From contig JBLDXI010000031.1 in the NCBI GenBank assembly GCA_047495785.1, positions 1,488,001 to 1,552,000 of the forward strand: a stretch of 64,000 bases of DNA, read 5' to 3'. The notes beneath the pieces are model-generated. The model was not told the origin of the DNA. It was given only the letters and a program-made list of their open reading frames with translations, and made no database searches. Source of the DNA: Lepidodermella squamata. Taxonomy: Eukaryota; Animalia; Gastrotricha. This document shows, one piece after another, positions 14,430 through 52,675 of the stretch; position 1 is the first letter of the stretch, and each line of letters opens with the position of its first letter. Made by a program: the position numbers and the translations under genes.

Positions 14430-14847
14430 ATGGAATTCCAAGTTTTATTGGCACATATTTTATTGCTTTTAATTTCTTATTTTACGTACATTGGTAAGCC
14501 CTTGAAAAGTCCACTGTTGGATGGTACTGAGATTAATTGCCATAGATTGCTGCTGCACTACCTACCCTCCGCCGAGTCCGCCCCACAACCGAAAATGTGG
14601 TTATTGGCCAGGAGGAAGTGCTTGCATCCCTCATACTTGTGGCTACAATGATAACAAAGGATTTTACGTGCATTCGGCTGGCGCTCAGGGCTGCCGTCTT
14701 GTCAAGAACGGCTGCGATGAGGATGGCGCTTACAAAGCATCGTTCAGCTCGATTGAAGAATGCCGAGCGACCTGTGACGACAACGATGAGGATTATCGAC
14801 GTTACTCACGCTTCAACAATCGACCCTGGTTTGTGAAGAGCAAATAA
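14430..14847 (+). CDS. Secreted single-domain Kunitz-like protein with extra cysteines (L4). Exons 14430..14493 and 14546..14847
   Basis: Signal peptide, 52-nt phase-1 intron, then CCC, a Pro-rich spacer and KCGY..C..C..GC..GCD..SFSSIEECRATC. Confidence 0.88.
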
Positions 14848-20999: not shown

Positions 21000-22775
21000 C
21001 TAGCCCATGAGTGGATAGACGCAAGCTTGCTGACAGGCCTCTTGTGAACGGAAAGCATAAGGTGTCAAATTCTCATTCTGGCATCCGACACTTCGAAGAA
21101 TACATTGCCGGAGCCGCGCCTCAAAAACAATGTACGGTCCGATGTTGTCGCTACACGTCTGAGGCGGCATTCTATAGGTGCAAGGATTAACCGGAACGAC
21201 CGCTAGAACTGGAGCTTGACTGACTCGCCAACTGGCACCACCACATCTAGCCTGGCACTCTTGCATCGATGAAAACGCGTACTTTCTAACTTCATTCGCG
21301 TTGCAGCCGTATGATTGAGTCAAACATTGCCGGAGTGCAGAGTTGTAAACGATGTTCTCGCCGATGTACAGCTTACAAATGTATTCCGACTTGGTGTACG
21401 AGCATTTATCGATGTAAACCGGATTTGACTGGACAGGGATTGTGAATGCATCATCAAAGCGTTGCATGGGAGGTGCAAAATTTCCACGGCATGTTTGCTC
21501 GCACTCTTGTTGGGACGAGAAGGCATACTGGCGAACATATTCCGCGCTACAACCGCTAGATTGGGTCGTACACTGCCTTGTCTTCGAGTCGTAGACAATA
21601 TTTCCGTCGATGAACATTGCGCACGTTACCTCGGGAACTTCATAGCTGCATTTGCTCACTGAAAATAGATAGCTTTATCAGTCTTCTCGAATTAAGGCGA
21701 AAGAAATAGCGTAGCATTCATTCTTTTCATAATTCATAGCCGCGGAGTGAGGTAAATGGGCCGTAATACAGCTTTTTGACGATAGCTACGGACGATAGTT
21801 ACGACGAAAGATTAAAGGAATTCAAATTCTAAAACTACGTCATCATCATCATCATCATCGCCTTCTCCTGGGGTTAAAAAACCGAGCATTTGCCAATCTA
21901 TTTAGAATAGACTAAATCTATTCATAGGGAAACGTTGGTAGCGACATGTGACATGTGTGTGAGTTGAGAAGGGTTCGAAATAATAGAGGTCGGGCCTCAA
22001 ATAAAGGGCGGTCTCTCAGATATAAGACAGTTTCGACTTGATCGAAGAAAATAAAGGACGGGCCGAACATTAAAGATTAAATGCCATTTAACGTCCAAAC
22101 TTCCCAATTTTCAATATTTCGAAAGATAAATTAGGGTGATATTTTCTCTGGTGTTCCATTGAAACCGCGCGTTTTCCATCGGTTTCCACGGCCAGCCACT
22201 GATGTCCATGGCTTTTCATTAATGATATTTTCTATGAACAATACGTCCAACATCTAATTCTAATCGAAGTCGGAAAAGTGTAGGCTTTCTTGTGTCATAT
22301 GAAGCTGACAAGGAGAGCAAAGAATAGGAGAGGTTACTAATTCCACCAAGTTACCAGATTTAGCTCAAATTTTCAATGCATGTTATTACATGTTGCTGTC
22401 AATAAAAATCTATTTTTGATGTAACATGGTGAGGAAGTGACATTTCTGCCCAAGGCTGACAATATCATGGAACTATGAAAATTTGGAAAAAGTTGCACCT
22501 TGATTAATTTGATGCCGTCCAGTTGATCCACATGCAGCTTGACACTCAGCCATGGAATTGAATGAAAGAACTCGAACGGAATCGGAAATACAGCCGCCGC
22601 TTTGAATCGTACATTTGCCTCGATTCGCATCGTAGAGGATACACTCGCCGATGTACATAGCACTTAGATCATTCGGGATGCGATAGTTGCATTTCGGATT
22701 ATGGCAATGTGTTAAATTTGCGAATATCGCAGAAGTAACAACGAAAACTACGGCAAAAATTGTATCGGGATGCAT
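21000..22775 (-). CDS. Secreted multi-Kunitz-like protein K2 (4 domains). Exons 22775..22499 and 21658..21000
   Basis: Same architecture as K1. Domain 1 has Cys2->Ser and a new Cys (LSAMYIGECILY). Ends YPLMG*. Confidence 0.88.
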
Positions 22776-24554: not shown

Positions 24555-26011
24555 CTAGCCCATCAGTGGATAGACGCAAGCTTGCTGACAGGCCTCTTGT
24601 GAACGGAAAGCGTAAGGCGTCAAATTCTCATTGCGACATCCAATACTTCGGACAATGCACCGTCTGAGCCGCTCCTCGAAAACAATGTATGGTCCTATGT
24701 TGTCGCGACACGTCTGAGGCGGCATCCTGTAGGTGCAAGGGTTAACAGGAGCAACTGCTGCAGTCGGAGCTTGAGTTACTAGCCCGTTTGAACAACGGCA
24801 AGTCGATTGGCACTCAGATAGGCTTCGGAAGGCGTATTTGGCGACTTCGTCACGGCTGCAACCGCTTACTTGAAGGATACACTGTCTTGTGTTTGCGTCG
24901 AAAACTATGAAATCACCAATCCAAATCATGCAGGTATCTACCGGCTTTCGAAACGAGCATCTGTCGACGGAACTTGGACCCACTGGATTTGACGGGGAAT
25001 CGAGTGTGAATGTATCCTCAGCGATTTGAATGGGAGGTGCGGAATTTCCACGGCACCTTTGCTCGCACTCTTGTTGGCTCGAGAATGCGTACTGGCGAAC
25101 GTATTCCGCGCTGCAACCGCTTGATTGGATCGTACACCTCATTGTCTTCGAGTTGTAGACAATATTATCGCCGATAACCATAGCACAGGTGATCTCTGGC
25201 ACTTCATAGCTGCATTTGTCGACTGAAAAGGAATAAGAAAAGGTTAATAATTAAGCTTTCATCTCATTAATCTTTAGCGCTGCAGGCCTTTTTGATACAA
25301 TTTCAGTTTTCAGGAAGTTCAAACTTGATAGCGGATATCATAGCTTAATATCGCAAGGATTTGAAAGTTCTCAGAGTTCAATTGGCATATTTTTTGAAAA
25401 CTTAGGCGCGGCGTACGAGCATTATTCACGAAACCTGGATTTGACGGCGCAAGTGATGCAATCGGAGCTCGAGTTACTAGCCCGTTTGAACCACGGCAAG
25501 TCGATTGGCACTCAGATAGGCTTCGGAAGGCGTATTTGGCGACTTCGTCACGGCTGCAACCGCTTACTTGAAGGATACACTGTCTTGTGTTTGCGTCGAA
25601 AACTATGAAATCACCAATCCAAATCATGCAGGTATCTACCGGCTTTCGAAACGAGCATCTGTCGACGGAACTTGGACCCACTGGATTTGACGGGGAATCG
25701 ATTGTGAATGTATCATCAACGCGTTGAACAGAACCTTGATTAGTTTGACGTCGTCCAGCTGATTCGCATGCAGCTTGACACTCGGCCATTGAATTGAACG
25801 AAACAGATCGAACGGAATCAGCATTGCACCCACCGCTTTGAATCGTACATCGGCCTCGGTTCGCATCGTAGACGATGTTTTCGCCAATGTACATCATACA
25901 TAGAACATTCGGAATGCGATAGTTGCATTTCGGATTTTGGCACTCAGCAGATTTTGCGAGAATCGCAAGAGTAACTACGAAAAGCTTGGCAAGAATTGTT
26001 TCGAGATGCAT
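24555..26011 (-). CDS. Secreted multi-Kunitz-like protein K3 (5 domains). Exons 26011..25435 and 25222..24555
   Basis: ATG 26011 (MHLETILAKLFVV..). Exon 1 reads through two domains. Phase-1 CCAG|GT donor to TTTCAG acceptor. Ends YPLMG*. Confidence 0.85.
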
Positions 26012-27270
26012 TTCGCTTATTGCCCGTGAATGGAAGCGTGGAGAAGGCAGCGGCCGCGCTATATATACGCTCAGAACCTGAGGATTATTCATGACAATGC
26101 CAATAATTACATTTGAGGCGCGTGTTGTTTACTTCGGCAATAAAAAACTGTTTCGAATATTTTTATATAATTTCACGTAGGCAGATGAACTTGGCGTTCT
26201 GGTTTTTCTTCTTAGAGGCGTGTGTGGTATGCTCGGCTAGCATCAGTGAGCCGCTTTTGTAGCATTTTTTCTGGTCAATACCAACTGCTTACGTGCACTG
26301 TCGCGGTCACGCCACTCGAGATGCCGAAGGTAAACAAGCACGAACAATCCGGATTGTCTTGTATCAATATTTTGAACTACGAGGCCGTGAAATCGGACAA
26401 TCCGGTCTATTAGTCATGTGCTGATTGCTGATATGTAAAACTAGAACGCGCCTTACTTTTGAATCCGTATTCGTGCGAGAACTATAAGATAGGAAATGGA
26501 AGAAAAATGCGCGGCCGATTCCGAAACGGAACACTAAAATCCGAAGGATAGTACGTTTGAGTGGTATGGAGTTTGATAGTCACTACTTTCAAATGATGAG
26601 AGCCTCCAGAGCAAACGAGAAAAGACAATTTCGTTATGGGGTAAGCATGCAGCTTGAGTACGCAGTCTGAGACAGTCTAGTAGGACATGACCTGGAACGG
26701 CCTTGAAGAATTCGAATTTGAACCTCAAGCGATTTCACAAATTATTTCGGGCTGACTTTTATTAAATAAAATTAAGAAGAGCTATAGAACTAGAAATTAA
26801 TTAACAAATTAAAATTAAAGACAGAATTAAATGCCTAACAGATGCAGTTTCAAGTATGTTCCTTCCCGACCGAATGAAGATTTCCAAGATTGCCCTGTTC
26901 GTCGAAATAATCGAACTCGTCGATGAGTGATGAGTCCGAGGCAAAGGTTCTCGACTGAAAATTCTTAAAATGTTGCAGATTCATGAATAAAAATGACAAA
27001 ATTGCAGTCAGTTTAGTCAATTAAAATTAGATTAGATGAAAATATCAGACAAAGCGTCAAACTAATCGATTGAATTCCTTCTTAAAATTAGTTTATCGAC
27101 GTAGCATGACACTGAAACAAACAACTCTACCTTAAAACAAATTACAAAATAATGAGGGAAAATTGCAAGTGTGAATTAGGTTTTAAAATAGCGAAATGAG
27201 CGATCAATTTTACTAAGAGACGCGTATACCTTTCGCTCGCCTTGGGGGATTCCTAGAGGATTCTTTTAAC

Positions 27271-27529
27271 TTCGGCCATTGGGATTAATTCAATTCATTC
27301 CAAGAGCGTGGCGATCGTATGGCGACTGTCCTACATGAACGATGTAGAAGCAATTTTCCCGCTGTTGGATTACAATGTCCGTCCTCGGAAAAAGCGCAGC
27401 TTTCATGTTGTACAACTACCGTCGCAGTTATACTGCCGATGAATGAACGAAACACGCGGCGTGTCCAGGAGTGATCGATTCATTCACTGTAATGACTTCA
27501 AAAACAGTACAGCGGCGGAAAATGCGAAA
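27271..27529 (+). pseudogene. P4H exon-3/exon-4 decayed fragment
   Basis: Similar to 17838-18062, then to 18205-18252, with indels and stops. Confidence 0.88.
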
Positions 27530-27860
27530 TCTTGTATCATTATTCTAACAATATGGAGAATTCAACCGAATTCATCTCAATTCCTTCTGAAATGCCGCTC
27601 GTTTCATCGTCCGCACTTGATGCCTTCGAATGAGAAAAGAAACACTCAAAGGGCCATTTATTGATTCGGGAAAAATCTAAAAGCTAACTCCATCAGTAGT
27701 AAATAGATCCAAGTTTCGCTAATAATCAAAAAAGAATCAGTCGAGAGCAATCTCTTTTAGGATTAAAAATTGGCATAAGTAGAAAAGTAACGGCATGAAG
27801 TTCGGAAATACAGATAATTTACAGTTTACAGTCATGATTCAGCCACGTATTCAGTTATAG

Positions 27861-29541
27861 TTAGCCACGTATACAAGTCGATTGGCATTCAGTTACGTTT
27901 CGGAAGGCGTACTTGGCGACTTCATCACGGCTGCATCCGCTTACTTGATAAATACACTGTCTTGAGTTTGCGTCAAAAACGATAAAATCGCCGATATAAC
28001 TCATGCACGTAACTTTCGGCTTTCGAAACGAGCATTTATCGACGGAGCCTGACATTGACTGGCCCGGGATAATGAATGAATCATCAGGGCGTTGCGTGGC
28101 AGGTGCAGAATCAACACGGCACGTTTTCTCGCATTCTTGTTGGCTCGAGAAAGCGTACTGACGAACGTATTCGGCACTGCAGCCGCTCGTTTGCGTCGTA
28201 CACCGCTTTGTCTTAGAGTCGTAGACAATATTTCCGCCGATGATCATTGAACACGTATTTTCAGGCAATTCATAGCTGCATTTGTCGACTGAAAAGGAAT
28301 TTTGAAAGGTTAACAATTCGGCTTTTACCTCGCTGATCTTAAGCGCTCAATGACTATTTCATACAATTTCAGGTCTCAATATGTTTACGATTATGATAGA
28401 TTTGAATGGAGCGACCTTTTCAGAGTGGGTGTCCTCTAATTTAATCGAAGCCAATATCAATTCAAAATCTCTCAATGATTTATAGGCATATTTATCTAAA
28501 ATTTAGATTTAGAGAACAAGTATTTATTGATCTAACCTGGATTTGACTGGCCCGGGATTGTAGATGGATCATCAGAGCGTTGAATGAGACGTGCAGAATC
28601 TACACGGCACGTTTTCTCGCATTCCTGTTGGCTCGAGAAGGCGTACTGGCGAACGTATTCGGCGCTGCAGCCGCTCGTTTGGGTCTTGCACTGCTTTGTC
28701 TTTGAGTCGTAGACGATATTTCCGCCGATAACCATTGAACAGGTGATCTCAGGCACTTCATAGCTGCATTTGTCGACTGAAAAAGAGTTTGAAAAACTAT
28801 AAATTAATCGTTCATCGCATCGACCTTCAGAGTTTCCAGGCTAATTCGTTGTTGGTTGTTTTCACGAAAACATGAAATCGAATGAGATTGCGATTAAAAA
28901 CTTCACATCCCAAGAAAAATACGTCGGAAATCTAATTACAAGGTTTTATGTGTTTTGTGTTATTTGAAGCCACCAAGGAGGAACAAGAGGAGATGTTGTA
29001 GGAAGAAGGAAAATCGCTGCCAAAATGTCCGAATTTCAAGACTGATCAGCCCGAATTTCCGAGGCCTAGAACTGATCAGTTGATAAATGACAAATTTCGA
29101 AATCAAGGGGAATATATAAAAATGAGGTTAGAGCCTGGTGGAAATCTTGCTTCAGTAAGTGAAATGATTATCCATTTTTGAAGTAATATTTTGGGGTAAG
29201 TGACTTATCAGCCCAAGTTACACAAATCCATACTGCGTTTTAGCTTATTCGAAAAAGGTTGAACCTCGAGTAGTTTGACGCCGTCCTGTTGGTACACATG
29301 CAGCTTGGCACTCAGCCATGGAAGTGAAAGAAACCGATCGAACGTAATCAGCATTGCAGCCACTCGTTTGAGTCGTGCATTTGCCTTGATTCGCATCGTA
29401 GACGATGTTCCCGCCAATGTTCATCATGCATAAAGCATTCGGGATGCGGTAGTTGCATTTCCGATTTCGGCATTGCGCCGAATTAGCGAAAATCGCTAGA
29501 GTAACTACGAAAAACTGAGCGATAATTTCTTCGAGATGCAT
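27861..29541 (-). CDS. Secreted multi-Kunitz-like protein K4 (4 domains). Exons 29541..29265, 28776..28537, 28288..27861
   Basis: Three ORF blocks joined by phase-1 GT-AG introns. Ends CIRG*. Confidence 0.87.
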
Positions 29542-30378
29542 TTTGATGTGCCCGTGACGGGAAGTGTCGAGAGCCCGCTTTATATACGCTCAGAAAATGA
29601 AGATTACTCATTACAATGCCAATAATTACTTTTGAGGCGTGCTGTTTACTTCAGCAAGAAAAAAACTGCTTTAAATATTTTTATATATTTTACGTAGGCA
29701 GATGAGCTTAGCGTTCCCATTTTTTTGTCTCAGCATTTTTTCTGGTCGATACCAACTCCTTACGTGCAGCGTGACCGTCGCTCCACTCGAGACGCCGAAA
29801 ATAAACAAACACGAACTTGGCCGTGAAATCAGACAAACGGATCTTCCTACGCTGTCTAGCCTTGATAAACAAATAGCATTATGAGATAGGAGATGGAGAA
29901 AAATGCGTGGTTGATTTTGAAAATTATTACTTGGTTTCATTAGTCAGATGAACTTAGCGTCCTGTTATCAACTGCTTACATTAGTGTCGCGGTCACGCCA
30001 CTCGAGACGCCGAAGGCAAACAAGCAGGAACAATCCGGATTGTCTTATATCAACATTTCGAACTAGGAGGCCCTGGAATCAGACAATACGGCTTTTAGTT
30101 ATGTGCGGATAGCTGACACGTAAAACTAGGTCGCGTCATACTTTTATATCCTTATTCTTTATATCCGAGAACTAGAAGATAGGAAATGAAAGAAAAATGC
30201 GTGGTTTATTGGTTTATTCGGAAACACCAAAATCCGATGGAACTAACTAACTAAACTAAATAACTAACATCAATAGTAAATACATTCCTGATCTTGTAAG
30301 AAATTCAAGAAAGGCCCAATCAGAATCTCTTTTAGGCATTGACGTCGATAGGCAAACAATGGTGTGACGCGCGTTAAA

Positions 30379-33300
30379 TACCGTAAATTGGGGCAAAATG
30401 GCCGCGGGAAAAAAATTACCCCCTGATTTTTTCGCATTTTTACACCCCTGTTGAAAAATCTTGGTCTAAATGTGGTGTACTTTGGACCAGACCCTTGAAA
30501 AAATCACTCGTCCCAACTGGCCCTAATTACGGCACCCCTAATTCGGCTTGATCAAGGCCAAACTAGAGAGAGTGACTTTGGTCCAACTTGCTCCACTTGA
30601 CAGCAGAGCCTGGCGCGACTTGGTCCGAACTCGCCCCAATGCGGGCTAAAAATTAGGGTGGATTTGGTGAGCAATGCGGTTCCTTCTCATCCATTGCGCG
30701 TGCTTGATTTCAACGAATTGATGCGATTTGAGACGCAAAAGCACATAGTTTAACTATTTCATTTACTTTATTTTCAAAAGCCTCGAATCACCGGTGATTG
30801 TCACTCTTCTCAAAATAGATGACTTGGACAAATCAGTATTTTCACGTAAATTCATGAAAATAACATAGAAATAATCACAGAAATAAGAATCAAAGAATTG
30901 CGACGTATTAGAGATTATTTAAGATTTTCATCAGCCATTCCAGAGATTCTCGCACGGGCATAGCTCGCCGCCTCGGCGCTTCAGTCACCAATCGACGTCA
31001 TTCCAGCATAGTCTGCCAATCCAAATACCACTGCCTGAAAAACAACGTCAATATACATAAACGCTCAATTTATGGATAAATTATTGCTAAATTAAATTTG
31101 GAAAAATAAGCAAATTTGGCAAGGAAAGGATTCGTAAAATTTCCCTAAAACATTGCGACTCGCAAAAAATTAGCAAAAATTAGCAAAAATTATCAAATAA
31201 TTTAGTTAGCAATTTATATATTTTTCTTACCTTTCGTGCAATCTTGCTTGCCAAAAGACGCGACAAAGACGCGTTAACCACTCCCTGAACGACTAACGCC
31301 TGTTGAATTTCATACGGTAAAAAATAAAAAGTGTATAAAACGATAAAAAAAATTTGACCTCGTCATCAGTTTCAGTAAATTCAAGACGTCGCGCGAAATT
31401 GAGGGTCATCGCGGGTAAATGGGTTTATTGTCATCAGCGTTTTAAGCCATTGTCAGACAGATCTAGACGTGACACGGGTCTAGCTTATTGCCACCTTAAC
31501 GATCAATTCACCAAACCGCAGCCATTGCTGCGAATCCTAATGCCATTTCCCATTTCCTGAAAAACAAGGAGATAAGGAACAAATTTACTAAACGCAAAAT
31601 AATTCAGAAAAATTCCGCGAACCCAATATCAAAAATCGTTATTAGATAATCATATACCATTTTATAACTGATTTTTTCTAAAATAGTAACCATAATTTTC
31701 TGCGAAAATAAATGCACGACAAATTAGCAATACGTGCGAATATTAGCCAATATTCTACTATAATTTTGATAACATGTCAATGATTTCCTATAATGTGTCT
31801 CCGAAAATTTCAATTTCTAATAATGCCTGAGAATCACTTGAGAAAAATGCATGATCGAAGGTTGAAGTTCGCTGATAAGTCGGTCAATTAGTGGGAAACG
31901 AATCATCAAAATTTTTCAAAACTATTGCTACGTCCGGATTTGTTTTAAAATCAAACCTGAATCATGTGAAATTATTCTGGCAGGCGGTCTTCACGGGTGC
32001 CAAATGAGATTTAGCGTATAGATTCGTTTGAAGACTCGATGATTGCCGCTAAAATTGAACAATTTCTTGTTTTCTTTAACTGTAATGCTTGTAGGTACTA
32101 TACGCCGGCCGTTAACCATGAATAAAGGTCATGACAACATAAACTATTGAAAGATTATTTACTAAAGAAATAATTAAGCTGACAATAAAATCAAGGTGAT
32201 GGGTGATGGGCAGAAAATAGCTGCCGGCTGAGAAGTTGATGAGTTGATGTTCTTAACTTAGCGAAATTCGGTTCTTTCAAATAGAATAAAAAACAAATGA
32301 ATGCGCGTTTTATGAAAGTAGGTCAAGCACGACACATTGTTACGCAACAGGAAAGCTAATGACGGAACAATGCAGTGCCGCTTTGAGCGAGTGACATTTG
32401 TTTTTCTCTCCGATTATTTTTTATTTAAAATTAAATTACAATGCTGCCACCATTTTTCAATAAATCCTTCGAATCTCTCGCGAATTTCATGCCCAGGGGC
32501 CAAACGAATCCCGTTCAAAGTGTTCCAGTTTTTTCCCCTATATAATTATAACCTGAACCTGAAGCTGAACCGTTAAGACTAAGTATTTTTGTATTATATC
32601 GTCAGATTCGTTGCGTCAATAAAACTGAGGGAACGTCGTACATTTTATCTGATGACTACCCATATCTTCAAGTTTAAAAGTCAGTTGGCGAAACAAATAC
32701 CAGAAGCCTCGACTAGCCCCATCAGGTTTCATCAATTCAGTTCTAATTAATCATCTATCCGTCTAAAATACGTCATCCAATATCATGGCGATTGAGCTTT
32801 AAATTTATTCTTTCCAGCTTTAAATGTGGCAGGTTATTCCTGTGACCTTGCAAAGAGTGAACTGCTCTAATTTCGGACACAAAGCAGGCAAAGAATTGTC
32901 AAAAAATCATTTTAATTAGATTTTATTATATTAATTAATTATTGTAATCGGGTAAATTAAATTGACTTCTGATTGCTGAATTTTTGGGTCGGGATAGTAT
33001 ACCTGAAATTTGGGTAGAATATTACAATAATCGCCGTCAGTCACACAGAAAATCAAATGACCAGGCCTCATACTGAAAATCACGGATAATTTCAACTTTC
33101 AACGTTCAATTTATTTCGAATTGTTTAATTAATTGGAAAATACCGGAAAATTCTCTGGAAGGGATTATTGGGCGAATTCATCAAGATCTTTAGACGGGTT
33201 GAACAGGAATAAACAGGAAGAAGAATGAAGTCAATGCGCGATTGTCGTTATTTTTTCATACTTGTTACTTGTGACCAGTTCAGCACGTGACATTTATCGC

Positions 33301-33930
33301 ATCATTTTCCAAAAAAAATAGCAGAAAAATGAATCTGACCGCTTATCGCCGACCGTTTCCCATCAATCAGCCGATCCTGTCGATTTTTCTCATCGATTCG
33401 TTTTCCCACAGATCTTCGTAAACTCCCGAAACATTTTCATCGACAGAGATCAATCAATTATCCATAACCTTAAAATCAAAACTCCGCGTATTTCAATCGC
33501 ATATTATATGTTACTACGACAAGATTTCACGAGTTGCGGTACAAAATGACAGTTTTATAGCTTTCGGTGAGATTGGAGCGATCAAAACATGAGCTAGATT
33601 CAAAGTTGAACGCGTGAATTCACGAATAACAAAATTCGAGGCATGATTTTTAAAATATTTATTTTCGATCAAGCCACCTTAAAATCAGCCAGATCGGGGC
33701 AATTCGTGCTGCGCCATTTCAACGATGTCAAACCGCCCCACTGCGGGCCAGCCATTAACTTGCATTTTTTCGAAATTTCAGAACAAATAACCGTTGCCCG
33801 CATTCAACCAAACTGGTGTCAACCGCAAATATTCATTTTTGGGAAGAAAACACGAAGGCCGAAGTACACCAAATTAGTGTCACAAATTCTGAAAACTCCT
33901 CCGCGGTCTAGGATTTTCCGACAGGGGGTT
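30379..33930. mobile_element. Large AT-rich insertion, probably a decayed TIR transposon
   Basis: Starts TACCGTAAATTGGGGCAAAATGG (pogo/Tc1-like end). Patchy inverted similarity between ends (ACCCCTGTTGAAAAATC vs GATTTTCCGACAGGGGGT; TGGTGTACTT vs AAGTACACCA). Interrupts the K array. No transposase ORF. Confidence 0.5.
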
Positions 33931-33958
33931 GTGATGCGTCCATCAGAACTTGAGTGAT

Positions 33959-34247
33959 CTGATGAGCGACGGTCGAATCCTCATAAAGTAGCATTTTTTT
34001 GCTCCGCATTTAATTTTTTTAATTTTTTTGTTTTAATTGTCCATTTTGATAATTTTTAATTAGTTTCTCCGTTTTTTCTGAGAGTTTTATTGCTGAGCAA
34101 CTTTTAAACGTCTTCCGAACAAAAAAATGTCCGGCATACGTGGTGTTAGTGGAATAATTAAAATGGATAATTAATTACAAAATTAAAAAAATTAAATGCG
34201 GAGCAAAAAAATGCCACTTTATGAGGATTCGAACCGTCGCTCATCAG
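33959..34247. repeat. Fold-back inverted repeat (~65-bp arms) containing a Pol III B-box-like motif
   Basis: CTGATGAGCGACGGTCGAATCCTCATAAAGTAGCATTTTTTTGCTCCGCATTTAATTTTTT and its reverse complement ending at 34247. Confidence 0.8.
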
Positions 34248-34626
34248 TTTGTGTATAGCGTATAGCTATACTGCCTTCCACCTGTGACTACACGCGTGAA
34301 GTGTTTGCTCAAGTGGATTAAGGTAGATAAAGGACGATTAGTGCGCTTACTGACGAAAAACCGCAACCTATCCAACTTTAACCACTCACCCAGCAGGCGC
34401 TTATGTAAGCCACTTCATACAAGGCTCTGCCTATTATTCCGGTTCTGCCCTATATTTAGGTCCTGCCTAATAATTCGTAAAATACGGCATTTAACCGTTG
34501 AGGACCTTCGCCGTTAATTATCATATTAGGGGACAGGAGGGAGGGGGGGGGGGGTGGGATTTTTCTGGCAAAGAGTCCCATAATCATGGAACGATGAATA
34601 TATTTGAAAAGGGTGAACCTGGATTT

Positions 34627-34883
34627 ATTTAGCGTCGTCCAGTTGATCCACATGCAGCTTGACACTCAGCCATGGAATAAAATGACAGAGCTCGAACAGA
34701 ATCAGCAATGCAGCCGCCGCTTTGAATCGTACATTTGCCATGGTTCGCATCGTAGAGGATACACTCGCCGATGTACATCGCGCTTAGGACATTCGGAATG
34801 CGATAATTGCATTTCGGATTTTGGCAATGTCCTAAATTTGCGAAACTCGCAAATGCAACGGCAAGAAGTTTCTCGAGATGGAT
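34627..34883 (-). pseudogene. K5 pseudogene: orphan exon 1 of K2 type
   Basis: ATG changed to ATC, TAA after TGRR, no downstream exons. Shares the K2 change (LSAMYIGECILY). Confidence 0.88.
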
Positions 34884-35731
34884 TTCGCTGAGCCCGTGAC
34901 TGGAAGTTGGAAAGTATGTACGCTTATGAACTGAAATTTATTCACAACAATGTCAACAATGATTCCTGAGGCGTGCTGTTTATCGCGGCCATAAAAATGT
35001 TTTTCAAAAATTTTCATAAATTCTACACACGTTCTGGTTTATCTACTTAAAGGTTTGTGTGCGTGTGGTTTGCTCGGCTATGTGTCTGTTAGCCGCTGTA
35101 GCATTTTTTCTGGTTAATCCCAATCGCTTTCGTGCATTTTCGCCGTCACGCCATTCGAGAAGCCAAGGGTAAACAATAATTCAGGATTTAGTTAGTGAGC
35201 ATATTGATCCTATTCTTGTGGATTCGACGCGGAAAATTTATTGCAAGTAGCTGAAGTGTATGTCAACGTGTCATGCTACTGGCTGCCGACTGCCAGCATG
35301 AAAACAGTTTCTCAGCCAATCCTGCCAAGGTGACAAGTGCAAATAGGCCGGAAAAGGTCCAGAGCGAAACCCCCTAAGGCGGTAGAAAGCCGAGTTTTTA
35401 CAATGATGCGTGAAATAAAGGGGTTGTGTGGATTGGGCGGAATATGAGAATTGCGTGCCATTGAAACCATAACAGCAGAGTCTAATAAATTTTCCCTATA
35501 GGTAACAATCTTCCTGTCGAAACGCTTCAAAAAAACAATCGTCAGCCTTCGAATGGAAAAAGGAACACTCAACTTATAGTTTGTTTATTCGGTGAAATTT
35601 ATTGTAACAAATAAGCGATTTCATTTAGGATGGCAAAAAAAGAAAGTAATGGAATGAAACTCAAAGCGCGTAAAAACTTATCGTTTGCAGGTACCTATGC
35701 CTTCGCAACGTAGTCAGTTTTAGGCTGCAGC

Positions 35732-37738
35732 CTAGCCCCTCATGATGAGGGGATAGACGCAAGCTTGCTGGCAACCCTCAGTTGTACTGAAAGCATACGG
35801 TGCCAAATTCTCATTGCGACAACCGACACTTCGGACAATGCATCGCCGGAGCCGTGACTCGAAAACAATGTACGGTCCGATGTTGTCGCGGCAGGTCTGA
35901 GGCGGCATTCTGTAGGTGCAAGGGTTAACTGCTGGAGCGGGAGCTTGCGTGACCAGCCCGTTGGAACTACCACATCTAGCCTGGCACTCCTGCATCGATG
36001 AAAACGCGTACTTTCTGACTTCATTCGCGTTGCAGCCGCTTGACTGAGTCGAACATTGCCGGGTTGCAGCGTCGAAAACGATGTTCTCGCCGATGTACAT
36101 CATACAGGTATTTTCCGGCTTGATGTACGAGCATTTATCGACATTTGATGGATCCAGAGTTACGAGGGTGAAAGATGGGCGGCCACAAGTTGATTGGCAC
36201 TCAGAAAGGTTTCGAAAGGCGTACTTCGCGACTTCATCACGGCTGCAACCGCTTACTTGCATGATACACTGTTGAGAGTTGGCGTCAAAAACCATGAAAT
36301 CGCCAATATAATTCATGCAGGTATTTTGCGGCTTTCGAAACGAGCATCTATCGACGGAACCTGGACCCGCTGGAATTGACGGGTAGCCGATAGGGAATGT
36401 ATCCTCAGGAAGTTGAATAGGAGGCCCAGAATTTCCACGGCACCTTTGCTCGCACTCTTGACGGCTCGAGAAGGCGTACTGGCGAACGTATTCGGCGCTG
36501 CAGCCACTAGATTGGGTCGTACACTGCCTTGTCTTCGAGTTGTAGACAATATTTCCGCCGATTAACATTGCACAGGTATTCTCTGGCACTTCATAGCTGC
36601 ATTTGTCGACTGAAATGACTGAAAATGGAATTTTCAAATGTTAACAATTCAGCTTTCATCTTGAATGAAGTTTGAATGAAGCTCAAAATCTTTAATTGAC
36701 TTATTTTTCTAAAATTTGTATAACGACTTTGTGTACGGGCATTTAACGATCAAACCTGGCTTTGGCGCGGGCGTGATGAATGTATCATCAGCGCGTTGAA
36801 TGACACGTGCAGAATTTCCACGGCATGTTTGCTCGCATTCTTGTTGGCTGGAGAAGGCGTACTGTCGAACGTATTCAGCGCTGCAACCGCTCGTTTGGGT
36901 CATGCACTGCCGGGTCTTTGAGTCGTAGACGATATTTCCGCCGATAACCATTGCACAGGTGATCTCAGGTACCTCATAGCTGCATTTGTCTACTGAAAAA
37001 GAGACGATAGGAAATGACAGAAATGTTATACGTCCGGCGCCACTCAATTTAAACAAAATTAATTATAGCTTACATATAAAAAGTAGATATCCCAAGAGAA
37101 ATACGCCGGGAGACTAATTTCAGGGTTTATCGTGTTTCATGCTACTTGAGGCCACCAAGGAGAAAGGCATGTTGTAGGACTTGGGAATACTGCCTCCCAA
37201 ATCTCTGAATACCAAGACTAATTAACCCAACATTCCGAGGCCTGCTAGGCCCAAAGCTACACAACACATAGAGCGAATTAGGAACTGGTTAGGATCGCAA
37301 AAATCGACATAAGGGTCCCCCTTTGGTCTTCGAATGAGCTCACCGTAGGGACCAATGGGATTGGTAGGGCTGATCCCCAGCGGTAATTCGTTCTCTGACA
37401 CAACAGCATTGCATACTTTGAATCCTTACTCCACGTTTAGCTTATTTGAAAAAAGTTGAACCTTGATTAGTTTGACGTCGTCCAGCTGATTCGCATGCAG
37501 CTTGACACTCGGCCATGGAATTGAACGAAACCGCTCGAACGGAATCAGCATTGCAGCCACCGCTTTGAATCGTGCATTTGCCTTGATTCGCATCATAGAC
37601 GATGTTTTCGCCGATGTACATCATGCATAGAAAATTCGGAATGCGGTAGTTGCATTTCAAATTTTGGCAATTCGCCGAATCAGCGAAAATCGCAAGAGTA
37701 ACTACGAAAAACTTGGCAAGAATCGCTTCGAGATGCAT
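35732..37738 (-). CDS. Secreted multi-Kunitz-like protein K6 (6 domains). Exons 37738..37462, 36992..36756, 36609..35732
   Basis: Phase-1 introns and six modules. Ends YPLIMRG*. Confidence 0.9.
37267..37397. mobile_element. MITE family B in K6 intron 1 (P- or hAT-type)
   Basis: TIRs CATAGAGCGAATT / AATTCGTTCTCTG with perfect 8-bp TSD ACACAACA. The empty site is visible in the K7 intron at 44154-44161. Confidence 0.9.
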
Positions 37739-38399
37739 TTTGCTATTCCAGTGGTTGAAATTATGGAGAGCCCGTCGGGCTGCGCTTTATATACGCTCAG
37801 AACTTGAAGATTATTCATAACAATGCCAATAATTACATTTTAGGCGTGCTGTTTACTTCGGCGATAAAAAAACTGTTTCGAATATTTTTATATATTTTAC
37901 GTAGGCAGATGAGCTTAGCGATCTGGTTTTTCTTCTTAAAGCGTGTCAGGTATGCTCGGCTAGCGCCGCAGTGAGCCGCTTTTGTAGCATTTTTTCTGGT
38001 CAATTCCAACTGCTTACGTGCATTGTCGCCGTCACGCCACTTGAGACGCCGAAGGTAAACAAGCACGAACAAGGCATATTGTCTATTTTGACCTAAGAGG
38101 CCGGGAAATCTGGCAATCAGATCTTCCTCCGCTGTCTAGCCATGATGAACAAATAGATAATTATAAGATGGGAGGCGGAGGAAAATGCGTGGGCGAATCT
38201 GGAACAGAACACTTATATCTGAAGGATGGCATGCTTGAGCGGATTGGAGGTTGATGGTAAATAATTCCAAATGATGAGAGCCTCTGGATCTGACTAGAAA
38301 TTGACAATTTTTCATTGGGTTAGGACAGTCAAAGGATTGTGAGTGCTAAATATAAACCTAATACTGTTAAATTCTGTCAATTCTTATTCACTAAACTCC

Positions 38400-40110
38400 G
38401 TAAGGTTCTGCCTGAACGAATTATCTCAGACGAAACCGACGACGGCGAGCGACGGTATCCCAGAATGTGCGCTGAAAGCAGCAGCAAATCTCACATGCAC
38501 AAGCCATCTTCAACAAAGTCGTCACCGAAAACGAAATCCCTGAAATATGGAAAATTGTAAGAGATGCCTAGCCCTCCAGATCAAACAGTTTATGCACGAA
38601 TCTAAATTTATGTTGCCTGCTCAATTTGGTTTCCGCCGCATCACTCAATAGATACATGTCTCACCAAAATGACAAATGACTGGCGAGTTGCTATCCACCG
38701 CGCTTTAACAGTTGCTGTTATAAGTATAGACATGAGCAAGGCATTCGATAACCTGAACCCTGCTGGTATAATTTCGTCGCTGAAAAGAATTCACTGGAGC
38801 TAATGACTAGCTACATTAGCGGATGTCAACAGATTACCAAGATAAACAATCAACCATCCTCGCCAGCTTTCATAAATTATGGAGTACCTCAAGGGTCAGT
38901 CTTAGGACCTCCGCTATTTCGATATATGTAAACGAAATCTCAACTGTTTCTATCAAATCCACCATCGTTCAATATGCGGACGATACAACCGTCTATTTTG
39001 CGGCCAAGTCTGATCTCGAAACTCAACAAGTTTTACAAACCGATATCGTTAACGACGCGCCAAAACAACCACTTAGATGACTCATTCGATCGTACTTTTA
39101 GTCGCCTAACGTAATGGTGAAGTACGTTAGGCCTTTTGAGCACCGATTTTTTCCTAATTTCGAACGTACTTTCCTCATAAAATCTATAAATAGTAAAGTG
39201 GTTGTTTTGGCGCGTCGCTAACGATATCAACCTAGTCACCAGCTGGCTAAGTACAAACAACCTTAAAGTAAGCGGAAAAAAGTCCCAACTAATGATAATT
39301 TCATTAAGCAAATCCGATCGAAAAATTGATATGTCTATTGACAGCGACAAGGTAGACGAAACCGAATCGATGCGACTACTGGGATTCACATTCGACTGCA
39401 AACTTCTTCACCGAGACCGCATCGACAGCGCGTGTTGCAAGGCGCGCAAAGGCCTGTTTGCTCGCCGCGAAAAATGACTTGAACCGAATATGTCTGAAAG
39501 CGATGGCGAATGGCCTGGTATTTCTTTTATTATTTGCATTACTGCGACGCTTGCGAAGCCTGCAAGACTTCAAGAGATCGAATGCAAGGCCTACAGGACA
39601 GAGCCGTTCGTATCATCATGAACGCGCCGTACAATGCCGACGCAGCTCCTTTACGGAAAGAGCTTGGTTGGCTGGACTTGTCTGGGAAACGCAACGTCCA
39701 TTTGGCGTCTTTTATGTTTCGATGCGTCATCGGCGAAGGCCCTGACGCCATTATTAACTTATTTACTGTCAGCAAGCCAAGTCGCTTTCGCAGCTCGGGC
39801 TTAACCTTCCAGGTACCGAAGATGCGGCTCGATTTCGGAATGGCCAGCCTGAGCTATCGCGGCCCGACATTTTTCAACACCCTGCCAGCTGCCAGTCAAT
39901 TTCTATTGCTCACAACATCGAACAATCGATATTGGCGATTACGACGGCACTCTACCAATGTGCGACTGCGGTCTCAAAGCTTGCGCAAGCGCAAAAGACT
40001 GCCGACAAATAGTCTACGAAAACTTCTTAAATTGTTGATCATTTTACTACATTTGTTGTATTGTTGGGTACTGATTGTTGCGACTTATGAAACGGGCTGA
40101 ATAGACATCA
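38400..40110 (+). mobile_element. 5'-truncated, decayed non-LTR retrotransposon (reverse transcriptase, CR1/L2-like)
   Basis: RT motifs across frameshifts: DGIP, QFGFR, IDMSKAFD, YGVPQGSVLGPPLF, YADD, and C-terminal LQDRAVRII..LRKELGWL..YRGPTFFNTLP. Confidence 0.9.
39047..39223. mobile_element. MITE family A, copy 2, nested in the LINE RT
   Basis: Same TIRs and interior as 7575-7775, ATAT-flanked. Removing it restores LQTDINLVTSWL. Confidence 0.92.
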
Positions 40111-40523
40111 TATCAGACAATTCGTTTTTTTCTTTCGCTAATTGCCGGTTACGGTTAGCTAATTGAGAGAACACACCGTAACTAGTGTGCAGAGCGTCAT
40201 TGATTTTACCTACTGGGTTTTGTTTTTATTGCGAAATCGCAATTTTCAAAAGGGGCTACCATTGTGTCGAAAATTTCTCAGTTTTTCGAATTTGTGAACG
40301 GCGGCGGCCGTATGTAATGAAGAAATACAGTACTACGACGAGGAGCAATAAAATAAGGCTGCTTTCATTACCGAGTGCAGGCGCCAGAAAGGCTCAGCGT
40401 GACGAGAGCGACTAGGACAACAGTAAAATCGTTTTTCACGATGAAAATTAAAAGCTTTTTTGATGAAAATTTTGAAATGTGACGAATTCATGAGTAGTGT
40501 CATTGGAAATATTGGAAGCTCTA

Positions 40524-40731
40524 CAGGGTAGCCAAAAAGAGCTGCAGAGGGCGAAGTTCATTGATTGGAGTGCGCATCACTTTAATGAGGAGTTTTAGGA
40601 AATTGAAGAATTTCATGGGCAAAAGAATGCTTGAAATTGTTGCATGAAATTTTTCGAAACACCTCATTAAAAATTGATGCGCACTCCAATCAATGAACTT
40701 CGCCTCCCTGCGGTTCTATTTGGCCACCCTG
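40524..40731. mobile_element. Tc1/mariner-type MITE
   Basis: TA|CAGGGT...ACCCTG|TA with ~70-bp imperfect TIRs. Confidence 0.88.
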
Positions 40732-41820
40732 TAGTTGTATAACCCCACCCTCAAATAGAAGCCCACTCTCGAATATAAGCCCAGTTTTGGGTGATTTTTG
40801 GCCTTCCAACTTTGCATAAGCCCGGGTTAGTATTTGCAGCATTACGGTATACTGAAGCCTATCGCGGTATCGCGTTTAGTTTCGAGGGTCCCCCTTTCGA
40901 GGGTCCTAAACACACAAAAAACTGTGTCATTTTCCCCCCTTTATTCGAGGGTCCTAAAACATCATAACTACTGATAATTACCAATAAATCAAACTGCTCT
41001 TCTGGGTATTTGCCTAAATACCCCAAAGCCATCGCTTTTCGATTCCTGAAAATGATTTAAAAAATGGACGACCCATCAAATTAAACCGAATAATTGATAG
41101 CACAAGCATCGACCGCACCCATGTTATAAGCCAGCCGGCGGCCAAAAAACCCGAGTTTGTGTGCACCCCTTGAATACTATTCACAAACTCGTGTTCCTCA
41201 TTTCGCCGGCGAATAATAGCTCCCGTCTCTACCTGCCTTTATGGTAGATTTATAACGGTTGATTATTAACGGTTTATAACGGTAGATTCAACGGTTGATT
41301 TATATTACAAGAATCCAGATCTACAAGGAGCATTTAATTAATTCTGAGTTAAGTAAAAAGATCTCTATTGAAGATTGAAATAAACAGCTTTTCGACAGCC
41401 ATTTCACGCATCTATTCCGTCGCCGCTCCCACGACATCCTACGACGGCGTCCCAAGTCCCAAACTACCTACAGTGTGTCCCAGAAGTTACGCAACTAATT
41501 TTTTATTTGGCAACGTTTGTAGGAAATTCAACAAATTTTATCGAATATTCCATCGTTTACCCGCGATTTGACTCCGAGATTTGAAGCTAAATTGCGAATA
41601 AAGAAAAAAGCTTTTGCTCTTCGGATGTTTGATCAGAATGGATATGAATCAAAGGAAAATCTGATTCACACGTAAGAGGCAAGAAGACATGAGACATGAA
41701 CGAGGTAAGAGACGAGGTAAGGTCGCAGCGATCGCTTACTTGTTATGCTTCCGGCTCCCCTTCGCTCGCATTGAGAAGATTCAAGTTGATGGCAACGCTA
41801 CTGTGATTTCGTCTTTTTAC

Positions 41821-42085
41821 TTCGGCTTTCGGGATATTTCAATGCATTCCAAGAGCTCGATGTGCTTGGCGATGTCTACGTTTTCTACTTGAACGACGTC
41901 CGAGAGGGTGGTGGAACTCCGCTGTTGGATTTTTTATATCCGTCCTCAGAAAAAAGCGCAGCTTTAATGTTGCACAACAAGCGTCGCAATGAAGCCGCCA
42001 ATGAGCCAACGAAACACGCGGTGTGACCGGTGATTGATTCACGGTAAATGACTTCGAAAACAGTACTATGGCGGAAAATGCGAAA
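41821..42085 (+). pseudogene. P4H exon-3/exon-4 decayed fragment
   Basis: Similar to 27271-27529 and to P4H copy 2 (GAACGACGTCCGAGAGGGTGGTGGAAC; AACGAAACACGCGG). Confidence 0.85.
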
Positions 42086-42094
42086 TCATCTATC

Positions 42095-42850
42095 ATAAAG
42101 TACGGATGATAATTTTTTTGCCTCGCAGTTTATTAATAGCTCCGCAACCATGAAGAATTTTTTGGAGCGAGTTTCACAAGCCGATAGATCTAGTCTGGTG
42201 TAAACTTTCCTTAAATCCTCGTTAAATTTGGATAAAATGTGAGAAATTGATGACGAAAATGCTTCGTGTGATTTTTGGTGAAAAAGTTCATTTTTGAAAA
42301 ATGCTATTTTCCATTTGTAGCGTTTTTTTGTCATTTTCCTGCAGTAAAGCTAAATTGGACCATATTCTTAGCAGGGATCGATGTCAATACCACTCCGTTA
42401 ACCGAGATTTTCACTTTGGACCGAACAGAAACGTTTCTCAATGACGAAATGAGATCCAAATGGGTTTTGAAATTTTTGGGAAACCGCACCAAATTTGCAA
42501 AAAGCTGCAAGTTTCGGGTTGTGCAATTGTTGATTTTTGTGGAAATCGGCGACATGGATGAATAGTGGACCACCTCTCGACTAAATCTGAACCCTCTGAC
42601 AAGAAGAAAGATTGCCACAAGTCACATCGGATGTAAAATAGCATTTTTCAAAAATGAACTTTTTCACCGAAAATCACAAGAAGCATTTTCGTCACCAATT
42701 TCTCAAATGTTATCCCAATCTAACGAGGATTTCAGGAAAGTTTACAACAGACTAGGTCTATCGAACGGTGAAACCCGCTCCAAAAAATTCCTCATGGTTA
42801 CGGAGTTATTAAAAAAATTCGAGGCAAAAAAATCATCATCCGTACTTTAT
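42095..42850. mobile_element. Long-TIR non-autonomous element (~215-bp arms)
   Basis: ATAAAGTACGGATGAT...AAAAATGCTATTTT (42095-42310) is the imperfect reverse complement of 42635-42850. Confidence 0.9.
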
Positions 42851-42860
42851 TTGTCTGATA

Positions 42861-42931
42861 CAGCACGAGTAGAGAGTCTAATGAGTAAATCGAGTACGGC
42901 GAGTTCAGATATAAACGATTTACGAGTGCTG
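42861..42931. mobile_element. Small TA-flanked MITE; related sequence inverted at ~24088-24180
   Basis: TA|CAGCAC...GTGCTG|TA. Interior GAGTAAATCGAGT.CGGCGAGTTCAGATAT matches the reverse complement near 24105-24137. Confidence 0.65.
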
Positions 42932-43308
42932 TATCAAAAAATATTGCAGGAGCACATCTACTAACACTATATTTTTGAAACGAATGGTATATTATGTATA
43001 ACCATTTGAGAACCTCAACTGAATGCATCTAACATTTCGTACGCTTGATGGTCTGCAGTTGATGCCTTCGAATGGGAAGAGAAACACTCAAAGGGTCGTT
43101 TTTATTAGGGAAAAGTGTATTGAACTAAAAGCTAGTTCCTTCAATAGTAAATGGATTGATATTTTGTGCTGATAATCAAGAAAAGTTCAGTCCGAAGCAG
43201 TAATCTCTTTAGGAATCAAAATTGGCATAAATAGAAAAGTAATGGCATGACGCTCAAAGTGCGGAAATACAAATCGTTTACAGGCATGGTTTAGCCACGT
43301 TCATAGTT

Positions 43309-44494
43309 TTAGTCAGACCGTATACAAGTCGTTTGGCACTCAGATACGCTTCGGAAAGCGTACTTGGCGACTTCATCACGGCTGCAACCGCTTACTTGAT
43401 AAATACACTGGCGTGAGTTTGCGTCAAAAACGATAAAATCGCCGATATACATCATGCATGTAACTTCCGGCTTTCGAAACGAGCATCTATCAACGGAACC
43501 TGGACCCACTGAAAACGGGTAGCCGATCGGAAATGTATCCTCGGGGAGTTGAAAAGGAGGTGCAGAATTTCCAAGGCACCTTCGCTCGCACTCTTGTTGG
43601 CTCGAGAAGGCGTACTGGCGAACGTATTCGGCGCTGCAACCGCTGTATTGGGTCGTACACCGCCTTGTCTTCGAGTCGTAGACAATATTTCCACCGATTA
43701 ACATTGCACAAGTATTCTCTGGCACTTCATAGCTGCATTTGTCGACTGAAATGACTGAAAATAGAATGTTCAAATGTTAACAATTCAGCTTTCATCTTAT
43801 CGGCGAAACCTGGCTTTGGCGCGGGCGTGATGAATGTATCATCAGCGCGTTGAATAACACGTGCAGAATTAACACGGCATGTTTGCTCGCATTCTTGTTG
43901 GCTGGAGAAGGCGTACTGCCGAACGTATTCCGCGCTACAACCACTCGTTTGGGTCACGCATTGCCGAGTCCTTGAGTCGTAGACAATATTTCCGCCGATA
44001 ACCATTGCACACGTGACCTCCGGCACTTCATAGCTGCACTTGTCCACTGTAAAAGAGTTTGCAAAACTATAAATTAATCCTTCATCTCATTGTTCTTCTA
44101 CGTTTAACGCTTGTATTATAACTAATTAACCCACATTTTCGAGGCCCCAAGCTACACAACACCATTGCATACTTTGATTCCTTACTCTACGTTTAGCTTA
44201 TTAAATACAAGTTGAACCTGGATTTATTTGGCGTCGTCCAGTTGATTCACATGCAGCTTGACACTCGGCCATTGAATTGAACGAAACAGCTCGAACGGAA
44301 TCAGCATTGCAGCCGCCGCTTTGAATCGTGCATTTGCCTTGATTCGCATCATAGACGATGTTTTCGCCAATGTACATCATGCATAGAAAATTCGGAATGC
44401 GGTAGTTGCATTTCAAATTTTGGCAATTCGCCGAATTAGCGAAAATCGCTAGAGTAACTACGAAAAACTTCGCAAGAATTTCTTCGAGATGCAT
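43309..44494 (-). CDS. Secreted multi-Kunitz-like protein K7 (4 domains). Exons 44494..44218, 44046..43810, 43745..43309
   Basis: Phase-1 introns. 5' half resembles K6 and the 3' end resembles K4 (CIRSD*). Confidence 0.88.
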
Positions 44495-52248: not shown

Positions 52249-52675
52249 CTAAGCCTGATAGTACCGATTGCCGATCAGTGGTATCAAAGTCAATAATGAC
52301 GTGACCATAGAGCAGTCGAATCTTGCGGTTTCACCTGTGATAATTAAAGAAAATAGGTTATTCTATGCCTTCAAAATATTGTTCTGGGATCTGGGATTTG
52401 ATGAACCAACCTTGGTTTATTAATTGTTGGCCTGAACCCGAAGATTCACACGCCGATTGGCACTCGGCGATAGAATTGAAAGAAGCTGCCCTGGTGTTAT
52501 CAGCGCTACAGCCGGAAGACTGAGTCGTGCATTTTCCCTTATTTGCGTCGTAGACAATAAAATCGCCGATATACATCGCACAAGAGATTTCGGGGATGCG
52601 ATAGCTGCATTTCGAACTTTGGCAAACCACTGATCCAGTAAAAAACAGGCAAATTACTAATATGAATTTCAGCAT
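52249..52675 (-). CDS. Secreted single-domain Kunitz-like protein K10. Exon 52675..52411 and probable exon 52334..52249
   Basis: Signal peptide plus N-type module and the same NQG|GT donor as K1-K8. A candidate phase-1 exon gives GETARFDCSMVTSLLTLIPLIGNRYYQA*. Confidence 0.8.

Follow-up and report, generated by a model that had tools for sequence, protein, structure and literature searches.

In few recent intron gains can both ends be assigned to a source sequence (PMC4974935, PMC3443670). In the potato RdRp gene, an intron was gained when the 3′ side of an intron was duplicated together with the downstream exon and a cryptic donor was supplied by the upstream exon (PMC4974935). As reported in PMC3443670, Gao and Lynch describe “imprecise” gains, in which partial intragenic duplications make introns via latent splice sites and often alter the coding sequence; in the same account, the AGGT tandem-duplication model of Rogers (Hellsten 2011) derives both splice sites from a duplicated AGGT and leaves the protein unchanged. 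Intronization of exonic sequence (Irimia and others) is cited in both PMC3443670 and PMC4974935. Here, we analysed a 64,000-nucleotide (nt) stretch of DNA from the gastrotrich Lepidodermella squamata (assembly GCA_047495785.1, contig JBLDXI010000031.1, forward-strand positions 1,488,001 to 1,552,000; “the window”, whose own numbering is used throughout), where four genes of a tandem array encoding Kunitz-like domains, K3, K4, K6 and K7, appear to contain a gained intron. This intron probably adds one more case, in a fairly good state of preservation, to a route of intron gain that is already known.

The explanation that we prefer, with a probability of roughly 0.7, is that one old rearrangement put the tail of the family's older intron 1 behind a truncated domain, thereby creating a second intron in what are now four gene copies. 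As in potato RdRp, the acceptor, pyrimidine tract and branch site would come from a pre-existing intron, the donor lies in a former exon, and stranded coding sequence has turned into intron. Unlike the potato case, the donor is a paralogue of the family's own donor, a whole domain is added, the two A copies are as diverged as separate genes, making a fusion of paralogues likelier than a fresh tandem duplication, and the intron was subsequently multiplied by gene duplication; splicing is read here from sequence alone. A latent donor and a change in the coding sequence are shared with the internal-duplication gains of Gao and Lynch, although the event in the array possibly did not take place within one gene. 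In common with Rogers' model, a rearrangement supplies the splice sites and an AG/GT proto-splice site acts as donor (a slash marks a splice site here and below), but the acceptor, CAG/TC, is copied from intron 1 and not from a duplicated AGGT. A precise AGGT gain was rejected on account of this acceptor and because the protein gains a domain. The likeness to intronization lies in the linker and C-domain start, of which about 45 nt are now intronic, whereas the remainder derives from an older intron or is untraceable, and the trigger would have been a rearrangement rather than point mutations.

The case leaves the known intron-gain mechanisms unchanged. Its value lies in an intron with both ends traceable to a source, in a gain whose later course is visible in four paralogues, with decay of the stranded coding sequence and a reduction in intron length from about 250 to 64 nt, and in a one-exon domain repeat that becomes a symmetric phase 1-1 module exon, the form needed by exon shuffling. 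An earlier note on this DNA had read the locus as an exon duplication plus a cryptic donor; relative to that account, the origin of the donor as a paralogue of the family's older donor is new.

The array and its putative second intron

The array lies on the minus strand at about 18.4–49.1 kb of the window and consists of eight related genes (K1–K8). In each, a first exon of 277 nt codes for a signal peptide together with a six-cysteine domain of type N, behind which domains of types A, X, B, C, D and Z follow. The architectures, with the slash at introns, are:

K1, minus strand: N / A-C-D-Z
K2, minus strand: N / A-C-Z
K3, minus strand: N-B / A-B-Z, with no A1
K4, minus strand: N / A / A-B
K5, minus strand: a lone broken N exon
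K6, minus strand: N / A / A-B-C-Z
K7, minus strand: N / A / A-B
K8, minus strand: N / A-X-B-C-D-Z

A single intron suffices for the models of K1, K2 and K8, as the earlier note had proposed, and in K1 the linker is coding (19051-19031). The features on which the comparison rests are:

25435-26011, minus strand: exon 1 of K3 as modelled in the earlier note (N-linker-B1-linker-donor), an in-frame fusion with no intron 1
25223-25434, minus strand: K3 copy of the putative gained intron, 212 nt, with TTAAC at 25247-25243
24555-25222, minus strand: exon 2 of K3 (A2-B2-Z), open frame
28537-28776, minus strand: exon 2 of K4 (A1 and linker), 240 nt, one 3-nt indel relative to K6 and K7
28289-28536, minus strand: putative gained intron of K4, 248 nt, the longest copy
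27861-28288, minus strand: exon 3 of K4 (A2-B, then stop), open frame
36756-36992, minus strand: exon 2 of K6 (A1 and linker), 237 nt, phase 1-1, open frame, no indels relative to K7
36610-36755, minus strand: putative gained intron of K6, 146 nt, GT-AG; 137 nt with the upstream AG (exon start 36618)
35732-36609, minus strand: exon 3 of K6 (A2-B-C-Z), open frame; ratio of non-synonymous to synonymous substitution rates (dN/dS) from A2 to B 0.24-0.28
43810-44046, minus strand: exon 2 of K7 (A1 and linker), 237 nt
43746-43809, minus strand: putative gained intron of K7, 64 nt; 55 nt with the upstream AG (exon start 43754); interior mostly deleted relative to K3 and K4
43309-43745, minus strand: exon 3 of K7 (A2-B, then stop), open frame
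19031-19051, minus strand: coding linker of K1 (P-G-F-V-D-K-C), which corresponds to the new donor but is unspliced and leads into an intact C domain
21402-21422, minus strand: coding linker of K2 (P-V-Y-I-D-K-C), the closest coding match to the 5′ ends of the K4 and K6 introns
36993-37461, minus strand: intron 1 of K6, representing the older intron, the apparent source of the copied 3′ end
19529-19282 (K1), 22498-21659 (K2), 29264-28777 (K4), 44217-44047 (K7) and 48836-48429 (K8), minus strand: the other copies of intron 1

The new donor reads CCAG/GT, with its last exon base at 25435 (K3), 28537 (K4), 36756 (K6) and 43810 (K7), and the acceptor reads CAG/TCGACAAATGC, with its first exon base at 25222, 28288, 36609 and 43745, respectively; the intervals between them measure 212, 248, 146 and 64 nt. 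All four junctions are GT-AG and phase 1, the model lengths are divisible by three, and no stop lies inside any exon, the exons having been translated singly and not as joined models. The junctions 25435^25222, 28537^28288, 36756^36609 and 43810^43745 proposed in the earlier note are thus GT-AG and exact to the base, its range of intron lengths (64–248 nt) agrees with the measured values, and its statement that splicing would be phase 1 and in frame holds at every junction. Read-through past CCA-GGT, where the earlier note had seen the frame die soon, ends at unrelated points: in K4 the codon after the glycine is a TAG stop, in K6 and K3 a stop lies 14 and 37 codons past the glycine, and in K7 read-through meets no stop ahead of the acceptor and enters exon 3 out of frame.

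In K6 (36610-36627, minus strand) and K7 (43746-43763, minus strand), the acceptor is present as a 9-nt tandem repeat (TTTTCAG TCATTTCAG). The repeat places another in-frame AG 9 nt further upstream, which would let the exons start at 36618 (K6) and 43754 (K7) and add Val-Ile-Ser to the protein. This AG is the first past TTAAC, the putative branch site, and either of the two AGs may be the true acceptor. A neighbouring gene has introns of 54–58 nt, so a gained intron of 64 or 55 nt is feasible.

Sources of the intron and the kind of rearrangement

Both ends of the gained introns have recognizable sources. Alignment to K1 and K2 identifies the first ~45 nt as the A-C linker and the start of the C domain (K3 with K1 over 41 nt, K4 with K2 over 57 nt including the linker, and K6 with K2 over 74 nt), in line with the decaying domain start that the earlier note had seen behind the donor. 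In K1 and K2 the linker is coding, runs on into an intact C domain and has no intron at that position. The stranded remnant is frameshifted by a 1-nt deletion in K3, contains a TAG and has lost its Cys codon in K4, and is reduced in K7 to 12 nt of the linker and C-domain start. At the other end, the last ~55–60 nt align to the 3′ ends of intron 1, with ~72–87% identity over the last 60 nt, and behind them come the same CAG/TCGACAAATGC boundary and an A-type exon, bearing out the claimed copy of the intron-1 acceptor with a further A-type exon behind it. All intron-1 ends are about equally similar to this 3′ part, and a source paralogue was therefore not singled out. The middle 40–140 nt of the K3, K4 and K6 introns, compared with the rest of the C domain and with upstream intron 1, did not rise above shuffled controls (best z 2.7). 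Aligning the new introns to intron 1 and to the C-domain coding sequence, as the earlier note had suggested, consequently gives a match at each end and none for the middle, and its reading that former coding sequence became intron applies to the first ~45 nt and not to the untraceable middle or to the 3′ end from intron 1.

The four introns align with one another at both ends and occupy the same junction region. Those of K3 and K4 also align through the middle, which matches nothing else, while K6 is without most of the middle and K7 without nearly all of it. Homology over the whole length points to one gain that was copied with the genes and later shortened by deletions, i.e., to a single intron gain multiplied by gene duplication.

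The donor also has a recognizable relative. Intron-1 donors read AATCAAG/GTTC (AATCCAG/GTTC in K7), and the new donors and the K1 linker read AATCCAG/GTTT or AAGCCAG/GTTT. Between the K1 linker and the intron-1 donor sites, 12–17 of 26 positions are identical, against a background of 6.6 ± 2.2 and with at least 15 identities in 0.09% of 26-mers. The end of the linker, CCA-GGT-TYC-GTC-GAY-AAA-TGC (P-G-F/S-V-D-K/R-C), is found again in front of the B domain of K6, K7 and K8 and of the C domain of K1, and the spliced N-A junction equals this linker end minus six bases. With a paralogous context and a recurrent linker, the donor site is no accident: the new donor is a paralogue of the intron-1 donor context rather than the arbitrary cryptic site implied earlier, and each P-G-F/S-V-D-K/R-C linker probably holds a dormant copy of the family's working donor. 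Measured by matches to MAG/GTRAGT, the new donors (CAG/GTTAGA, CAG/GTTTGA and CAG/GTTTCG) are no weaker than those of intron 1 (AAG/GTTCAA and similar), and a T at +3 is common to both. The intron-1 donors (first bases 19529, 22498, 29264, 37461, 44217 and 48836, minus strand) begin with GTTC, GTTT or GTG and show no consensus from +3 to +6; intron 1 shows partial conservation over its first ~25 nt, with AATAA-like strings just past an in-frame stop.

A more speculative extension, which we regard as doubtful, is that the linkers carry a heritable dormant donor (AAT-CMA-G/GTT, Asn-Pro/Gln-Gly) and that the same proto-splice site has given rise to introns twice, as the ancestral intron 1 and as the gained intron, the P-G-F/S-V-D-K-C linkers being either the template of intron 1 or collapsed introns that kept 6 nt (GTTYSN). 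If true, one locus would display a cycle in which an intron is deleted (K3), the relic of its donor stays coding, and the relic is reactivated once an acceptor lands downstream, with the outcome that a domain repeat is turned into a 1-1 module exon. Further donor-like sites, CCAG/GTTCCG, occur in the A2-B linkers inside exon 3 of K6 (36344-36364, minus strand) and K7 (43483-43503, minus strand), where they are apparently silent.

Concerning the kind of rearrangement, A1 and A2 within K6 and within K7 differ by a synonymous divergence (dS) of ~0.9–1.0, as do A domains of separate genes (values are rough, with 54 codons); A1 copies compared with each other, or A2 copies with each other, have diverged about half as much. 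The A1 domains of K6 and K7 and the A2 domains of K3, K6 and K7 form separate clades, and their followers differ as well: A1 is followed by a linker of the K1 and K2 type and the C-domain start, A2 by B. Because A1 and A2 are as diverged as separate genes and have different followers, a fusion of two diverged neighbouring paralogues, through unequal non-homologous exchange or deletion, is favoured over a fresh exon duplication. Together with the lack of an A1 in K3, these observations make the exon duplication of the earlier note doubtful. An old internal tandem duplication followed by domain loss may be an alternative route.

The course of events that we infer starts with one rearrangement in the ancestor of K3, K4, K6 and K7. 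An N/A-C gene would have been broken ~45 nt into its C domain and joined to the intron-1 end and the A-B-C-Z exon of a paralogue, either by unequal non-homologous exchange or deletion between neighbouring paralogues or by the old internal tandem duplication. The A-C linker would already have held AAT-CCA-G/GTT, a paralogue of the intron-1 donor AAT-CAA-G/GTT, and with a branch site (TTAAC), a pyrimidine tract and a phase-1 CAG now downstream, the spliceosome could remove the interval. The A domain in front would thereby become a symmetric 1-1 exon and the protein would gain a domain (N-A-A-B...). The stranded start of the C domain, having turned intronic, would have decayed by the K3 frameshift, the K4 stop and Cys codon loss and the K7 deletion; the intron then reached further copies through whole-gene duplications and was cut down by deletions from ~250 nt to 64 nt.

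Selection, splicing and alternative explanations

Both flanks of the gained intron bear the marks of purifying selection and of translation. In pairs among K4, K6 and K7, the A1 exon has dN/dS values of 0.07–0.27 at dS of 0.34–0.60 (Fisher p 8e-4 to 2e-7; K6 gives 0.07 against K7 and 0.27 against K4), and from A2 to B dN/dS is 0.24–0.32; values this far below 1 on either side argue that both flanks are translated. Exon indels are all multiples of three, the sole one in the A1 exon being 3 nt long. Intron 1 and the gained intron show 2–7 indel events per comparison and ~57–62% identity outside their 3′ ends. The GC content of the gained intron is 0.29–0.35 (0.29 in K6), against 0.51–0.52 in the A1 exon, and TTAAC is kept 21–31 nt from its 3′ end (36644-36640 in K6).

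The CAG/GT donor is the sole AG-preceded phase-1 GT common to all copies, and a search for other usable donors found a few phase-1 GTs just past the sixth cysteine, none of them preceded by AG. In the four-copy alignment CCAGGTT is invariant and the bases beyond it diverge. Since A2 begins right at the acceptor and lacks both an initiation codon and a signal peptide, splicing must connect it to upstream sequence; A1, being translated, is either joined to A2 or ends in an unconserved tail. Taken together, the gained interval is most likely spliced out in K4, K6 and K7.

Several observations weigh against this reading. The A1 and A2 domains of K4 cluster together and the B1 and B2 domains of K3 are the same, so that the history is blurred; gene conversion appears to be active in the array, and the K4 grouping fits it. 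The T at +3 is atypical for the genome, neighbouring genes having GTAAGT, GTACGT and GTAGAC. A word search with exon 3 of K6 among 5.8 billion proteins gave no match, and no protein of this species turned up in the collections searched, which leaves us to infer splicing from the locus itself. Skipping of A1, which is symmetric and would be skipped in frame, or partial retention of the intron is compatible with the data. Finally, K3 retains an old donor, AATCAAG/GTTC, that is intact (25735), phase 1 and in frame with the A2 acceptor at 25222, and K3 offers no independent support for the new donor.

K3 is thus where an alternative survives best. It has no intron 1: the N exon runs in frame into the post-A linker and the former donor G/GT is read as a Gly codon (25741-25729), which suggests that intron 1 and A1 were lost by an in-frame genomic deletion. 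A ~265-nt tract (linker-B-linker) occurs twice on the minus strand, at ~25450-25715 and ~24750-25015, with a handful of differences, and the B1 and B2 domains are identical over 162 nt. Being nearly identical to the B2 tract, the B1 tract is a recent copy, made by gene conversion or by duplication inside one gene, and its open frame consequently says nothing about selection. Because the old donor survives, K3 is ambiguous and may splice 25735^25222 rather than 25435^25222; its product would then be N/A-B-Z, and the B1 copy and the “new intron” would lie inside an intron 1 of 512 nt. The intact AATCAAG/GTTC at 25741-25729 and the uninformative B1 frame speak for this, whereas exon 1 is open from its ATG to the new donor across two rearrangement joints, and the new donor is likewise intact. 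For K3 only, we rate use of the old donor at somewhat under even odds.

Next in standing is the explanation that the donor behind A1 is unused or rarely used, A1 being optional or terminal, so that the products would be N-A1 with a short unconserved tail or an isoform N-A2 from which A1 is skipped. The symmetric 1-1 phase of A1 would keep the frame upon skipping, the donors are weak by the standard of the genome, and purifying selection on A1 and on A2-B would suit two isoforms equally well. We nevertheless consider it unlikely, since the same context is found in the intron-1 donors ~240 nt upstream, which must be used, CCAGGTT is invariant in four copies with diverged bases behind it, the read-through tails are alike in neither length nor sequence, and the only indel in the A1 exon spares the frame.

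Separate gains in K3, K4, K6 and K7, or the several decay stages that the earlier note saw side by side if these stem from separate events, might explain why the lengths range from 64 to 248 nt and why A1 and A2 of K4 cluster together. The alignment of the introns at both ends, and in K3 and K4 through an untraceable middle, in the same junction region makes such separate events very improbable, and the K4 clustering fits gene conversion; the four are better described as paralogous copies of one gain with different internal losses. Equally hard to credit is an ancestral intron, as in a classical Kunitz gene with one domain per exon, that K1, K2 and K8 would have lost: the K1 linker does resemble a donor plus 6 nt plus an exon start, and in a distant relative a phase-1 intron precedes the first domain, but the 5′ end of the intron holds C-domain-start coding sequence (Cys-Ser-Tyr-Thr-Lys) that belongs to an intact domain in K1 and K2, and the four domains of that relative lie in one exon. 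Dead gene fragments or an assembly artefact are very improbable. The array does contain a real pseudo-exon, K5, but three diverged copies have dN/dS values well under 1 on either side of the intron, and four diverged copies rule out a collapsed or duplicated assembly.

The domain family and its surroundings

The array domain appears to be Kunitz-like but divergent. Its best score with Pfam PF00014 is 19.9 bits, below the gathering threshold of 21 bits, while a profile of 35 domain copies matched 47 solved chains, 46 of which are Kunitz domains, with all six cysteines aligned. An AlphaFold model of the domain has a predicted local distance difference test score (pLDDT) of 93.6, and its top Foldseek matches are all Kunitz, with template modelling (TM) scores of 0.5–0.6 and weak E values of at least 0.15. 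Array and Kunitz/BPTI domains (including the AMBP-type lipocalin-Kunitz fusions) have six cysteines in Kunitz order in common, but the loop between the fourth and fifth cysteines is three residues longer in the array.

A phmmer search with exon 2 of K8 found only six weak, distant relatives among 1.84 billion representative proteins. The best of them (39% identity) is encoded on a European Nucleotide Archive (ENA) metagenome contig of another small-intron eukaryote, where a short signal-peptide exon (contig 1846-1990) is followed by four domains in one exon, with a phase-1 intron and a consensus GTATGT donor nine codons before the first V-D-K-C. It is uninformative about the gained intron. On visual inspection, two of these six relatives appear to combine a lipocalin-like N-terminal part with one array-type domain, the architecture of the vertebrate AMBP precursor (lipocalin plus Kunitz).

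Within the array, K5 (34608-34883, minus strand) is a lone N-type exon without an ATG and with an in-frame stop; no downstream domains were found, and it is a gene fragment. In the N domains of both K5 and K2, Ser stands in place of the second cysteine, and a new Cys lies seven residues further on. K4 (27861-27873) and K7 (43309-43324), both on the minus strand, have a stop a few codons past B and no C or Z domain, and their 3′ flanks (200 nt downstream) are 67% identical with few gaps, whereas the 5′ part of K7 groups with K6 (97% identity upstream) and not with K4. Exchange between copies appears to have made the array a mosaic. A ninth N-type exon (K9; 52358-52675, minus strand) lies at ~52.7 kb, with no downstream domains detected, and more distant one- or two-domain members of the cysteine-rich family lie beside the array at 6366-6968 (minus strand) and at 11323-11882, 12977-13522 and 14521-14847 (plus strand). 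An AT-richer gap (GC 0.38) separates K4 from K5 at 30000-34000, and open reading frames at 39033-40100, between K6 and K7, have no Pfam match; both this gap and the open reading frames at 39.0–40.1 kb may be remains of mobile elements.

The window as a whole has a GC content of ~42% and also contains genes for an SH2/SH3 tyrosine kinase, an ankyrin protein, an arrestin-domain protein, an M14 carboxypeptidase and a lipase. The best match of the Src-type kinase (9637-10728) among 5.8 billion proteins is 52% identical, and its named matches, mostly from molluscs, are ~40% identical.

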